A stretch of DNA of 64,000 nucleotides, taken from sequence record NC_019406.1. One strand, 5' to 3'. Made by a program: the position numbers and the translations under genes. The notes beneath the pieces are model-generated. The model was not told where the DNA came from. It searched no databases and saw only the letters and a program-made list of their open reading frames with translations. Positions 41,386 to 47,729 of this stretch are shown piece after piece (the first letter of the stretch is position 1; each line of letters begins with the position of its first letter).

Positions 41386-41635
41386 GCCGGGCTATCACGT
41401 CGCGGAAATCCCGAAGGGCGTCCTTGGCGAACCGTCCAAGATCGCCGAGGAACACGCCGAGTTCCAGGACGCCGTCTCGCAGGGCATCAAGATCATGGCC
41501 CTGGTCGAACTGGCGGACCTCTACGGCGCCATCAAGAAGTACCTCGAAAAGCATCACCCCGGCGTCACCTTCGACGATCTGGACGCCATGAGTTTCGTCA
41601 CCGAAAGGGCATTCATCAATGGCCGCCGCACTTAA
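41372..41635 (+). CDS. small helical protein, MazG-like fold possible
   Basis: KIAEE.AEF.DA...VELADLYGA acidic helical pattern. Confidence 0.6.
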   Translation: MLDSKPGYHVAEIPKGVLGEPSKIAEEHAEFQDAVSQGIKIMALVELADLYGAIKKYLEKHHPGVTFDDLDAMSFVTERAFINGRRT

Positions 41636-42473
41636 TTGGCGGGACATTCCCGTCGCCGATTGCGAGTTCAGCGTCAAAGCTTTGAACGCGATCTGGAACG
41701 ATCACGGACCGAACGTCACCCTGGGCATGCTCGCCTCCAAGTCCGATGAGGAACTGGTGCGCTCCGCCCACATCGGTCGCAAGACCCTGAAGGAAATCCG
41801 CGCCATGATCGACGTCATCTCGCAGCAGCATCCCGGCCCGGCGCCGCAACGTCCGGTCTTCATCCCGCACGCCTCGATCGACTGGTCGCTGCTGGCGCGC
41901 GCCGTGGATTTCTATCAAGCCCATGGCTTCAAGTACGTCGAGTTGCCCTGGGCAGTCAGTCGCGAGAGCGTCGCCATCACCTGTCCCAAGCCGGAGTTCA
42001 CTGCGGAGGTCGAGGGCCTGGGCAGCCTCGTGGGATCGGCCGAGCAATCGTTTCTGCACATGGACCTCGCCGGCAAGCTCGGCAAGGGTCGCTTCTGCGC
42101 CCTGACGCCGTGTTTCCGTCTGGGCGATTACGAAGATGACCTGCACCATCCCTACTTCATGAAGGTGGAACTCTACGCCAACAATGCCGAGGGCATCTCG
42201 GTGATGATGAAGGACCAGGAGGTGGCGCCGCCCGAGGCTCGGGCCATGATGTCACTGCTGCACATGATGAGCATCGTCGGCCAGTTCAACCGTACGATCC
42301 TGGGTGACGAGGAGGTGGACAACCTTCGCGGCGTCCAGACGGCTGAGGGCTTCGATGTCGAACTGAATGGAATCGAGATCGGCAGCTATGGAGTTCGCCA
42401 GCACGGCGAACATGTCTGGGTCTATGGTACCGGCGTCGCCGAGCCGCGCTTTTCTCAAGCTCGGCGCGCCTAG
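41619..42473 (+). CDS. RNAP alpha-CTD-like domain fused to class II aminoacyl-tRNA synthetase-like catalytic domain
   Basis: N-term FSVKALNAI..TLG.L..KSDEEL....IGRKTLKEI; C-term GSAEQSF, PCFR, FMKVELY, D.ELNGIEIGSYG, GTG.AEPR. Confidence 0.75.
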   Translation: MAAALNWRDIPVADCEFSVKALNAIWNDHGPNVTLGMLASKSDEELVRSAHIGRKTLKEIRAMIDVISQQHPGPAPQRPVFIPHASIDWSLLARAVDFYQAHGFKYVELPWAVSRESVAITCPKPEFTAEVEGLGSLVGSAEQSFLHMDLAGKLGKGRFCALTPCFRLGDYEDDLHHPYFMKVELYANNAEGISVMMKDQEVAPPEARAMMSLLHMMSIVGQFNRTILGDEEVDNLRGVQTAEGFDVELNGIEIGSYGVRQHGEHVWVYGTGVAEPRFSQARRA

Positions 42474-45046: not shown

Positions 45047-46456
45047 TTAGTCGCGGACACCCTCTGGCAGGAGCGCCTCGCCGATCACGCCGGCGTTCTC
45101 GGCCTCGTGGATGAAGCGCAGGACCGACTCCGAGAAGCCGTCGATGTGCGTCCACTTGCCGTAGCCGATGCCGTTCTTCGCCGAAGCGACGTTGATCACG
45201 TACGAATGCTTGACCTTCGGAGCCGGCATGCTACCGCCGCCCAGCATGTGGTTGACGGTCTTGCCCGAGGCTTGCTCATCGGTGATGATGATCAGGCGAT
45301 CGAACTCGAACTTCGACTGGACGGTGGCGACCGCTTGCACGAGCGCCGTACCGATGTGCGGCTGCGAACGACGGATCGCGTCGACGCCGGCCATGCCCTT
45401 GCGGGCGGGCACTTCCACGATCTTGTTCGAGAAGCTGATCACGCGCAGGTCTTCGGCCGGGATGACCGAGGCTAGGGCGCTAGCCGCGTCGATACGCGTC
45501 AGATCGGACTTGCCCGAGAGCTTCTCGTCCATGGAGCCCGACACGTCCACCATGACCACGGTGCGGCCCGGCAGCTTCGGCATGTCGGCGATCGAGGCGA
45601 TCAGCGCTTCGTCCAGGGCCGGTTCGAACGTCGGCGCCGCACGAGCCGCCGCGATGTAGCGGAACGGCAGGACGCGGTGCGCGCCGCCCTTGCGGGCCTT
45701 GATCGCATCGATCACCAGCTTGCGGTCGACTCCGGCCTGCTCCATGTTGCGCAGGTTGCGCAGCAGGGCGAGGTAGCCGAGCTTTTTGTCTTCCAGCAGA
45801 CGGGTGAACTCCGCCTTCTTGTCGCCGCCGGCCGACAGCGCTACTTCCCAGGTGTCCGGCGACTCCAGCGTCTGATCGACCAGCCCCTTGTACAGGGACT
45901 GACGCTCGTCGTTGGCGGCCTTCGGGTGGCTCAGGAACAGCACGTCGCGCAGACGCACTTCCTTGGCGCGGTCGTACTTGGCGATCTGATACGCGTCGAA
46001 CTTGGCGAACGCCTTGGCGAGGCCGAGCTTCATCTGCTTGGACAGCGGCGCCTTGCGGGCGCCGTCGCGCGGTGGGTTGTACTTCCAGTACAGCGCCACC
46101 AGTTCCGACAGTTCGTCGGCGCGCTGGATCACGCGGGCGATCGTCTCCGAGACGAGGCCGTTGCCCGAGCCGCGCTTGGCCAGGGTGACGAGCAGCAGCA
46201 GGGGGACGTGCCGCAGGTTGGCGACTTCGCGCGCTTCGATGGCGATCTGGGCCAGGGTGTCGACCGGGACCTGCTCAGCGAGCTTGGCGATGCGGGTGCT
46301 GATCTCGACGCCGTCCTCGTAGGCCTCGTTCTCGAACAGCAGGCAGGACATCACCGACCGGCGCAGCGCCTGGACGGCCGTCATGCGGGCTGCGGGAGCG
46401 CCCTCGTGCGTCTTTTCGGTGAAGGTGTTCTTGGTCGAACGGTTGGTCGATGCCAT
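45047..46456 (-). CDS. rsr: Ro60/Rsr ortholog (TROVE + vWA domains)
   Basis: THEG N-terminus, LRRSVMSCLLFE, ALLRNLRN, LPFRY, vWA MIDAS motif DVSGSM, IITDEQ; AGAGGAG RBS. Confidence 0.92.
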   Translation of the reverse strand: MASTNRSTKNTFTEKTHEGAPAARMTAVQALRRSVMSCLLFENEAYEDGVEISTRIAKLAEQVPVDTLAQIAIEAREVANLRHVPLLLLVTLAKRGSGNGLVSETIARVIQRADELSELVALYWKYNPPRDGARKAPLSKQMKLGLAKAFAKFDAYQIAKYDRAKEVRLRDVLFLSHPKAANDERQSLYKGLVDQTLESPDTWEVALSAGGDKKAEFTRLLEDKKLGYLALLRNLRNMEQAGVDRKLVIDAIKARKGGAHRVLPFRYIAAARAAPTFEPALDEALIASIADMPKLPGRTVVMVDVSGSMDEKLSGKSDLTRIDAASALASVIPAEDLRVISFSNKIVEVPARKGMAGVDAIRRSQPHIGTALVQAVATVQSKFEFDRLIIITDEQASGKTVNHMLGGGSMPAPKVKHSYVINVASAKNGIGYGKWTHIDGFSESVLRFIHEAENAGVIGEALLPEGVRD

Positions 46457-46492: not shown

Positions 46493-46634
46493 CCGCAAGG
46501 TTGAGGGGGAACAAGTCGTCCACGGGGTGCGTCTACCAATTCCGCCATCCCTTTCCGAAGATTGGGAGCAGGGCTTGAACCTGCATTTCGCTTTACCGAA
46601 GTATCCGTGTACTACGCCACCCTCAACCTTGCGG
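46493..46634 (-). ncRNA. Y RNA (YrlA-like) unit A
   Basis: 15-bp terminal stem; GUGGCGUAG..ACUUCG / GUUCCCC motif; T-arm, closed acceptor (UUCG), Leu-like D-arm. Confidence 0.8.
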
Positions 46635-46645
46635 CTGATGACTTG

Positions 46646-46807
46646 GAGAGGTTGAGGGGGAACTGGCGAGTACGGTTTCTTATTCCGGTGCGTTTGGCCA
46701 CTCCGCCACATGATCCTGTTGGGGATCAAGGTGGGACTCGAACCCACGTGCCCTTTCGGACGCCGGTTCCACGAAGTATCCGCACTCTGCGCCACCCTCA
46801 ACCTCTC
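46646..46807 (-). ncRNA. Y RNA (YrlA-like) unit B with class II variable arm
   Basis: Same motif; V-arm GUCC-GAAA-GGGC, T-arm, closed acceptor, D-arm. Confidence 0.8.
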
Positions 46808-46820
46808 GGTCGTTGGTGTC

Positions 46821-46964
46821 GAGGTAGAGGGGGAACAGGCGGCAACGCGTTTTTAGCGCTCTACCACTGAGCTACCTCGGGCTTTCGGCCCTCGGGTTGG
46901 ACTCGAACCAACGACCTCTCGATTAACAGTCGAAGAACTCGTCGCCTACGCCACCCTCTACCTC
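46821..46964 (-). ncRNA. Y RNA unit C retaining an Asn anticodon arm
   Basis: Same motif; UUCGA-CUGUUAA-UCGAG, T-arm, closed acceptor, UAGCUCAG D-arm. Confidence 0.8.
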
Positions 46965-46967
46965 AAT

Positions 46968-47105
46968 CGGCGTGTAGGTTGACACATGGGGAACTGGCGC
47001 CGTCGGTTTAGGGGGATCGAACCCCGTGGCGCGGATTTGCAGCCGCACCATTTCAACCAGCGAAGTAGCCGAAAGCTACGCCACCATGTGTCAGCCTACA
47101 CGCCG
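46968..47105 (-). ncRNA. Y RNA unit D with non-permuted Cys-like module
   Basis: Same motif; order D-like loop, GCA anticodon arm, T-arm; no acceptor stem. Confidence 0.72.
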
Positions 47106-47110
47106 ACACC

Positions 47111-47301
47111 CCGATCATAAGGCGGTGGGGGAACAAGCGATCCCACACACGTTTAGGCGCTCTAACCGCTGAGCTACACGCCCGTCATCAGTTCAGGCCG
47201 AAGCCTGGACTGGTGGTGGACGCGGCTGGATTCGAACCAGCGACCTCCCGCTCCAGATGCGAAGTAAGTGACATCTACGCCACCCACCGCCTCGTGATCG
47301 G
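47111..47301 (-). ncRNA. Y RNA unit E with internal CCA
   Basis: Same motif; T-arm, CGCGUCC-A-CCA, UUCG hairpin linker, GGGCGUG, D-arm. Confidence 0.8.
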
Positions 47302-47302
47302 T

Positions 47303-47479
47303 GTCGAGTGTGTTTGGGAGGTCCAGGGGATCAAACGAAAAGGCACTTTTTAATGCCGGTTGTTCTACCACTGAACTACATCCGAGTTGCCCCGGATGGC
47401 GGGATTCGAACCCGCGACCCACTGGTTGATGCGAAGAAATCCTCTTCTACGCCACCTGGACCTTCCAAACACACTCGAC
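47303..47479 (-). ncRNA. Y RNA (YrlA-like) unit F
   Basis: Long terminal stem; T-arm GCGGG-UUCGAAU-CCCGC; acceptor closed by GCAA; D-arm. Confidence 0.82.
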
Positions 47480-47508
47480 CTGCCTTTGACGACAGACCGA
47501 CCTGATCA

Positions 47509-47605
47509 GCGGTGGGGGAACGAGCGCCCCCAGGAAGACTAGACCCGAAGGTCCGGTCGCTTGGTTATGGAAAGCGAAGTACCCGAGGACTACGCCACCC
47601 ACCGC
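47509..47605 (-). ncRNA. minimal Y RNA unit G (no tRNA module)
   Basis: Same motif; internal GGACC-UUCG-GGUCU hairpin only. Confidence 0.7.
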
Positions 47606-47615
47606 AAATCTGGTC

Positions 47616-47694
47616 GTCCGGGAATTATCGAGGTCGGAAATGGGCCGAAGCCCGCTCTATGCAAAAGAAGTAACCGATCTCTGTCGCCACGGAC
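47616..47694 (-). ncRNA. minimal Y RNA-like unit H
   Basis: GUCCG/CGGAC stem; GUGGCG..UACUUC / AUUCCC motif variant; GGGC-UUCG-GCCC hairpin. Confidence 0.55.
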
Positions 47695-47699
47695 AGTGA

Positions 47700-47729
47700 C
47701 CTTGTCACATAGGCCGATTCCGATGTCAA
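47700..47729 (-). promoter_or_regulatory. promoter of Y RNA-Ro60 operon
   Basis: TTGACA at 47729-47724; predicted start near 5' end of unit H; GANTC in spacer; weak -10. Confidence 0.5.

Follow-up and report, generated by a model that had tools for sequence, protein, structure and literature searches.

Within a 64,000-nucleotide (nt) window of the genome of Caulobacter phage CcrColossus (JX100810, 100% match; window coordinates are record coordinates minus 62000), the minus strand at 47111–47300 encodes a small RNA, here called unit E. Despite a family score below the Rfam threshold and a protein-binding motif that is one base off the published consensus, unit E is very probably a YrlA-type Y RNA of the phage Ro60 system. 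Judged from its sequence, the tRNA-like module resembles a tRNA-Val in circularly permuted order and keeps a complete acceptor end. The best single reading is that this acceptor is opened into two pieces, and we give it about an even chance of being correct; that unit E is alanylated in vivo is rather unlikely. The idea of a Y RNA opened by RNase P extends the case of Mycobacterium smegmatis and is not a first, and the architecture is borrowed from two-piece transfer-messenger RNA (tmRNA). New here are the G3:U70 pair in unit E, the parallel layout of the phage tmRNA, the CCA encoded by all 28 phage tRNA genes and the class-wide enrichment of CCA one base past the acceptor 3′ strand (N-CCA).

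Architecture and fold of unit E

The initial annotation described a permuted tRNA-like unit with an internal CCA, and every element that it listed is present on the minus strand. The parts of unit E are as follows.

47111–47300, minus: unit E, whole, 190 nt (sequence; fold z = −4.8; 95% identical in the related CcrPW)
47283–47300, minus: basal stem 5′ strand of the Ro60-binding type, consisting of CGAUCA, a 3-nt bulge and GGCGGUGGG; pairs with 47112–47129 in the minimum free energy (MFE) and centroid structures
47275–47281, minus: GGCGUAG motif, candidate Ro60 site; shared by array units, some with one change
47255–47276, minus: small hairpin between the Ro motif and the tRNA-like module, holding the pseudo-anticodon of a mis-annotated tRNA-Gln (MFE)
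47225–47249, minus: variable-loop-like GGGAGGUC and T arm (YrlA and tmRNA_permuted alignments; invariant in CcrPW)
47218–47224, minus: acceptor 3′ strand CGCGUCC (U70 = 47220); 7/7 pairs with 47177–47183
47214–47217, minus: A73 (47217) and encoded CCA (47216–47214) (sequence; unchanged in CcrPW)
47184–47213, minus: 30-nt linker, an imperfect hairpin with a UUCG cap, predicted to be excised (fold)
47177–47183, minus: acceptor 5′ strand GGGCGUG (G1 = 47183, G3 = 47181) (sequence, fold); predicted RNase P cut between 47184 and 47183
47159–47176, minus: U8-A9 and D arm (GCUC/AGCGGUUA/GAGC) with G18 G19 (sequence, Rfam alignments)
47112–47134, minus: GUUCCCCC motif and basal stem 3′ strand (sequence, fold); slightly varied copies of the motif stand at the 3′ ends of units

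The T arm at 47241–47225 reads GCUGG/UUCGAAU/CCAGC, the D arm GCUC/GAGC spans 47174–47159 and the linker hairpin CAGGC-UUCG-GCCUG occupies 47207–47194. All seven acceptor positions pair, five as Watson-Crick and two as G·U pairs, and pair 3:70 (47181:47220) is a G·U. The features usually required by RNase P are all present: a 7-base pair (bp) acceptor stacked on a 5-bp T stem, G1:C72 and an RCCA end. The sequence also contains the elements of the type recognized by alanyl-tRNA synthetase (AlaRS), namely G3:U70, G1:C72, G2:C71, A73 and CCA.

The MFE structure of the 190-nt RNA (−91.3 kcal/mol; z = −4.8, with 0/200 shuffles as good) recovers the T and D arms as well as the 7-bp acceptor and the linker hairpin, and the CcrPW unit adopts the same fold (z = −4.0). 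Folded alone, the linker reaches −13.9 kcal/mol with pair probabilities of 0.88–1.0. Cofolding of the two putative pieces gives −76.3 kcal/mol, versus −57.9 kcal/mol apart, in nearest-neighbour models that leave out tRNA tertiary contacts, and the pieces are thus predicted to stay associated.

Unit E has the YrlA-class order of T arm, acceptor hairpin and D arm together with the tRNA core bases, as seen in both the Rfam alignment and the fold, and it lies ~650 nt upstream of the Ro60/Rsr (TROVE) gene gp139 on the same strand. The Rfam YrlA model aligns over positions 23–87 with 30.5 bits (E = 9e-4), treating the acceptor loop as a 35-nt insertion. Neither unit E nor the best array unit (F, 42.3 bits) reaches the YrlA gathering threshold of 69 bits, and phage YrlA members score low in general (L044, 43.5 bits; L041, 45.5 bits). 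The GGCGUAG motif is present in most array units and is one further base off in two; it differs by one base from the published Ro60 motif GNCGAAN0-1G. Unit E also has the permuted tRNA-like domain with G3:U70, A73 and CCA that characterizes permuted tmRNA, and positions 47175–47241 match the Rfam permuted-tmRNA model over positions 36–95 with 23.4 bits (cut-off 47). The tag reading frame and the pseudoknots of tmRNA are absent from unit E.

Permuted tmRNA, the opened Y RNA of M. smegmatis and the wider class

The initial annotation likened unit E to the permuted tmRNA of alphaproteobacteria. The comparison is apt, as the phage's own tmRNA has the same order and the same G3:U70 pair. Its gene lies outside the window and receives no call from ARAGORN:

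Record 132369–132662 (L007:1501–1794), plus: permuted (two-piece) tmRNA gene (RF04321, 83.8 bits; alpha_tmRNA, 53.5 bits)

The order in this gene is T arm, CGCCUCC, A, CCA, a ~78-nt structured linker with a UUCG hairpin, and GGGGGCG. Two-piece tmRNA, in alphaproteobacteria and in this phage, thus resembles unit E in the succession of T arm, acceptor 3′ strand, ACCA, structured linker and acceptor 5′ strand, and in G3:U70 and A73. From the T arm through the acceptor, the folds of the two RNAs share one junction geometry, in which the acceptor is followed by a small internal loop, C75-A76 are paired to UG and a linker helix begins. A string CUGAU common to both linkers was dropped as a motif since it is not conserved in CcrPW, and only the junction geometry is claimed. 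The RNAs differ in that tmRNA has a degenerate, SmpB-binding D loop whereas the D arm of unit E is canonical, and in that unit E carries neither tag frame nor pseudoknots and sits on a Y-RNA basal stem. Since the phage encodes a permuted tmRNA with the layout of unit E, the infected cell must process that layout.

A 3′ CCA is encoded in 28/28 phage tRNA genes (ARAGORN, whole genome). G3:U70 occurs in this phage only in tRNA-Ala (among the 28 tRNA genes), the permuted tmRNA and unit E; AlaRS recognition depends mainly on this pair, which does not vary among tmRNAs (Himeno 2014). Several of the phage tRNA genes have unusual first pairs (C1, U1, A1).

To our knowledge, the M. smegmatis YrlA is the only Y RNA for which opening and acquisition of a CCA end are established. 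Chen et al. (2014; RNA 20:1715), who place Y RNAs near Ro60 in >250 bacteria and phages, and Wang et al. (2018) describe this RNA, with its 7-bp acceptor, as two halves in Rsr immunoprecipitates whose junction is the RNase P site. According to Chen et al. (2014), it is cut by RNase P in vivo, where it is bound to Rsr, and by M1 RNA in vitro, the loop is nibbled and the 5′ half gains CA to give a CCA end, such that the RNA "could potentially be aminoacylated." An encoded CCA in a YrlA acceptor loop is not described in the passages of either paper that were consulted. A 2025 paper cites Chen et al. (2014) for CcrColossus specifically. The statement in the initial annotation that YrlA acceptors are closed loops therefore holds as a rule, most YrlAs being expected to stay closed according to Wang et al. 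(2018), but fails as a universal given the M. smegmatis RNA.

Unit E resembles the M. smegmatis YrlA in its link to Ro60/Rsr and in its 7-bp acceptor. Opening at the RNase P site, the CCA end and retention of both halves on Rsr are reported for the latter and are predicted for unit E. The two differ in the origin of the end, as CA is added post-transcriptionally in M. smegmatis whereas unit E encodes A73-CCA and continues from it into a structured linker of 30 nt. Furthermore, unit E has G3:U70, is borne by a phage as one of eight units, and has a cut that is predicted. The Salmonella Typhimurium YrlA (RF02553; structure in Wang et al. 2018) has the same module order, the same bases for tRNA tertiary contacts (U8, A14, G18 G19, the T loop) and a Ro60 neighbour. 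Its acceptor, however, is 6 bp with a short closing loop, lacks CCA and is not cut by RNase P; unit E matches its core alone. A further parallel is found in permuted tRNA genes of the Cyanidioschyzon merolae type (Soma 2007, as discussed by Wang et al. 2018), which also run from 3′ half through linker to 5′ half and whose closed acceptor is opened by RNase P or RNase Z. These regain an anticodon loop via a circular intermediate and decode, whereas unit E lacks an anticodon arm and closes its ends into a stem of the Ro60 type.

On these grounds the following pathway is proposed. Unit E would be made within the transcript of the array that precedes the phage Ro60 gene. It would fold as an L-shaped, tRNA-like body mounted on the long basal stem with the Ro60 site. 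Host RNase P would cut 5′ of G47183, leaving the 30-nt linker as a 3′ trailer, and we infer that this trailer is trimmed to the encoded CCA at 47214. The predicted products are a ~87-nt 5′ piece and a ~73-nt 3′ piece, which would be held together by the basal stem and the 7-bp acceptor helix. Such opening would parallel that of the M. smegmatis YrlA and of the two-piece tmRNA of phage and host. The freed end with G3:U70 and A73 would predict recognition by AlaRS, making the opened RNA a putative substrate of the host enzyme. Charged or not, the free CCA end could protect the nicked RNA from 3′ exonucleases.

For comparison with the wider class, 194 Ro60-upstream regions of viral and cellular origin were scanned for the module pattern of T arm, 7-nt acceptor 3′ strand, loop, complementary 5′ strand and D arm, excluding T arms within ARAGORN tRNAs. 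Three candidates (L034-2235, L038-2080 and L020-2071) were rejected as modules, since Rfam identifies them as 3′ ends of real tRNAs. CCA lies exactly one base past the acceptor 3′ strand in 21 of 157 unique non-tRNA modules, against a per-position background of 1.5% (P = 4e-14), and at any other offset the count never exceeds 8. In the strict set of modules with 7/7 acceptor pairs (n = 98), N-CCA is found in 13 (P = 3e-9). Of these 13 modules, 7 are viral and 6 cellular, 12 have a purine discriminator, and G3:U70 is present in 4/13, compared with 8/85 (~9%) of the others (p = 0.05). These results suggest that unit E is not an oddity, N-CCA standing at the tRNA position in about one in eight Ro60-linked modules.

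Five of the cellular N-CCA cases are related Hyphomicrobiales hexaloops (GCCAU, GCCAAU), found beside GUCAAU and AGCAAU variants. The other N-CCA modules form a coherent, mostly viral subclass with a 7-bp acceptor, R-CCA and 4–9 AU-rich bases, often with U at −1 (examples are L044, L230, L251, L020, L218 and L344). In three viral contigs, the modules beside Ro60 (L044, 2247–2363; L230, ~1737; L251, ~1605) have acceptors of the form GGGG(N3)...(N3)CUCC-ACCA with 4–8 loop bases after the CCA. Their positions 5–7 co-vary and their T stems differ, and the alanine determinant set is fixed. The L044 module scores 25.5 bits (E = 1e-6) against the tmRNA model. The L219 region contains an unrelated Y RNA (T arm ~347 nt upstream of Ro60) with a 7-bp acceptor, GCCA, a 29-nt linker with an 8-bp hairpin, CCU and the 5′ strand, which by its sequence appears to be an independent analogue of the unit E layout. 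That unit E and the wider R-CCA subclass of phage and alphaproteobacterial Y RNAs, several with the full GGGG..CUCC-ACCA signature, are opened and then alanylated by host AlaRS is an unlikely proposition as a whole.

As a separate observation, L230 has, ~1758 nt upstream of Ro60, a permuted tmRNA-like domain made of CACCUCC, ACCA, 3 bases, GGGGGUG and a tmRNA-like 5′ region. This domain may represent a permuted tmRNA of that phage in which the linker is minimal.

Ancestry, relatives and alternative explanations

Several observations weigh against an opened acceptor, some of which concern ancestry. The core of unit E looks, from sequence comparison, as if it had been captured from tRNA-Val. Unit E shares its acceptor 3′ strand, A73 and CCA without change with Caulobacter tRNA-Val(GAC), whose T arm is near-identical; relative to the tRNA 5′ strand GGACGCG, unit E has changed A3 to G and C6 to U, each change making a G·U pair. 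The stretch from D arm to variable loop also resembles tRNA-Val(UAC). CCA is encoded in the Caulobacter tRNAs examined, and no donor tRNA for the module was found in the phage genome. Given a tRNA-Val-like module, the CCA was possibly inherited and G3:U70 is possibly neutral drift. If the module was cut from the middle of two CCA-encoding tRNA genes, in the order 3′ half, CCA, spacer and 5′ half, ACCA and the spacer come free.

Outside CcrColossus, the only known occurrences of the unit E form are in CcrPW and in four relatives represented by contigs (93–95% identical). At 93–96% identity, conservation of four bases among such close sequences carries little weight. Searching viral and metagenome contigs with a T-arm-anchored 24-nt pattern returned CcrPW as the sole true homologue, the string being common to tRNA-Met, Pro, Val and other tRNAs. 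The CcrPW copy shows 0/66 changes in the tRNA core, compared with 3/30 in the linker (Fisher p = 0.03). Among the differences listed for the four relatives, acceptor and CCA are unchanged, and the D arm is affected by a one-U deletion of the D loop in two. In the 47255–47276 hairpin, both the loop and the outer pairs differ in CcrPW and other relatives. Linker pair 47210:47191 is G-C in CcrColossus, G·U in CcrPW and three relatives and A-U in one, and the linker loop changes from UUCG to UCCG, both of the UNCG type; a linker helix maintained in this manner fits a permanent long arm as well as it fits a processing element. Brevundimonas jumbo phages (Ro60 ~69% identical) have a syntenic unit with conserved flanks and a different tRNA-like core, which is closed by a short acceptor hairpin without CCA. 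The open-looking end is therefore derived in the Colossusvirus lineage and not needed for the basic role of the unit.

The folding results add two difficulties. C75-A76 are predicted to be paired (probability ~0.9); this pairing would hinder the cut and has to open for RNase P. In addition, the cofold MFE of the two pieces does not recover the intermolecular acceptor helix. On the side of the survey, the CCA of the Hyphomicrobiales hexaloops may be a loop motif that accounts for part of the class-wide signal. Finally, none of the sequencing runs holding the unit E locus is recorded as RNA.

A rival reading is that unit E is never opened. Acceptor and linker helix, with the small internal loop between them, would then make up one long hairpin of the kind found in cyanobacterial YrlAs with long stems, leaving ACCA as a relic and G3:U70 as a neutral change. 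We consider this a serious possibility, although not a probable one. It agrees with the tRNA-Val-like ancestry, where an identical 3′ strand with ACCA faces a 5′ strand altered by two transitions, and with the encoded CCA of phage and Caulobacter tRNAs, by which any captured tRNA end brings CCA with it. The linker helix is kept by wobble and compensatory change with pair probabilities of at least 0.88 including C75-A76, the Brevundimonas homologues are closed, and a closed state is what Wang et al. (2018) expect of most YrlAs. A permanently closed arm accounts less well for a helix that breaks exactly after 7 bp, at A73, or for a linker that evolves faster than the core. N-CCA at the tRNA offset is far above chance in many unrelated acceptors, which a decaying relic would not give, and the same geometry is found in the phage tmRNA gene, the product of which, going by the biology of two-piece tmRNA, is opened in vivo.

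Alternatively, the RNase P cut could take place and serve only to punctuate the array transcript, separating units H–F from D–A and the Ro60 mRNA, with a CCA end that has no role and stays uncharged. The units lie 2–6 nt apart and are apparently without promoters of their own (sigma-70 scan), a single precursor yields both YrlA and YrlB in M. smegmatis (Chen et al. 2014), and RNase P-cut tRNA-like elements mark RNA ends in other systems (Wang et al. 2018). However, the halves of unit E would stay base-paired, so a cut within the unit does not part its neighbours, and the encoded CCA, the purine discriminator and G3:U70 are left unexplained; we regard punctuation alone as improbable. Least plausible, to the point of being negligible, is that an ordinary gene has been mis-read, either a genuine tRNA-Gln, as in the GenBank feature at 47217–47284 (minus), or a second tmRNA, as the weak 23.4-bit tmRNA_permuted match might imply. 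The sequence refutes both. The tRNA-Gln is an artefact of tRNA-likeness that neither ARAGORN nor the Rfam tRNA model calls; only 5/7 of its acceptor positions pair, and its "anticodon" shifts from CUG to UAG in CcrPW and differs again in other relatives. A second tmRNA at unit E is rejected given the missing tag frame and pseudoknots, the canonical D arm and the real tmRNA located elsewhere.

The Ro60 array and biological implications

Unit E belongs to a locus in which, on the minus strand, a helix-turn-helix (HTH) gene is followed by a ~1.3 kb intergenic stretch and then by gp139.

45047–46456, minus: Ro60 gene gp139 (TROVE and vWA; Pfam; annotated in JX100810)
46494–47729, minus: array of eight Y-RNA-like units, H to A (sensitive Rfam scan and sequence reading)

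The gp139 product matches TROVE with E = 1e-17 and vWA_Ro60 with E = 3.5e-5, the latter just under the Pfam cut-off. Array units begin with a stem strand and GGCGUAG (or a one-base variant) and end with a near-GUUCCCCC motif and the complementary stem strand; the eighth is visible at ~47729–47640. Rfam gives no match in the array stretch at gathering score, and the sensitive scan returns YrlA matches to units F (42.3 bits), E (30.5 bits) and C (29.9 bits). The synteny of the array is also present in the Brevundimonas phages.

Some side observations concern the same region. Unit B (46650–46800, minus) has a C-CCA at 46722–46720, one base past the 7-nt acceptor 3′ strand CUUGAUC. Its CCA lies inside a 6–8 nt loop, followed by GAUCAUG and a class II-like D arm, and is identical in CcrPW; the module scanner did not pick this unit up owing to a D stem of only 3 bp. 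Two annotated "terminators" in the array region look doubtful, and one of them, at 47342–47357, falls inside unit F and has its U run broken in CcrPW. The closest cellular relatives of the phage Ro60 (~60–62% amino-acid identity; L297–L325) come from Caulobacter, Asticcacaulis and Phenylobacterium, the host's own family, and their YrlA modules are mostly closed by GNRA-type loops (GCAA, CGCAAG). A class II aminoacyl-tRNA synthetase-like ligase was considered for the open reading frame at 41619–42473 (plus) and rejected, as Pfam gives only an RNA polymerase alpha C-terminal domain (E = 3e-6); the remaining ~220 residues match no Pfam family.

The role of the tRNA-like domain in bacterial Y RNAs has been a standing question since 2014. 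With its encoded A73-CCA, G3:U70, an excisable-looking linker and a host that matures a permuted alanyl-tmRNA, unit E is a clean test case for two-piece and aminoacylated Y RNAs. Should it be neither cleaved nor charged, a limit would be set on the tRNA mimicry of Y RNAs. Y RNAs tether Ro60 to polynucleotide phosphorylase (PNPase) and gate the Ro60 cavity (Chen et al. 2014; Wang et al. 2018). A phage Ro60 with Y-like RNAs binds host PNPase and slows it. A nicked Y RNA in a Ro60-PNPase complex would need a protected 3′ end, for which a tRNA-type CCA, charged or uncharged, would be the obvious means; such protection was proposed by Chen et al. (2014). If the R-CCA subclass is opened and alanylated, its members would be charged, Ro60-bound RNAs in a host already running a two-piece alanyl-tmRNA. 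They would link Ro60/PNPase surveillance to EF-Tu, the ribosome or aminoacyl-sensing pathways, or the charge would shield the nicked RNA from exonucleases. If unit E proves to be cleaved and charged, Ro60 ribonucleoproteins would join tmRNA and viral tRNA-like structures as aminoacylated tRNA mimics.
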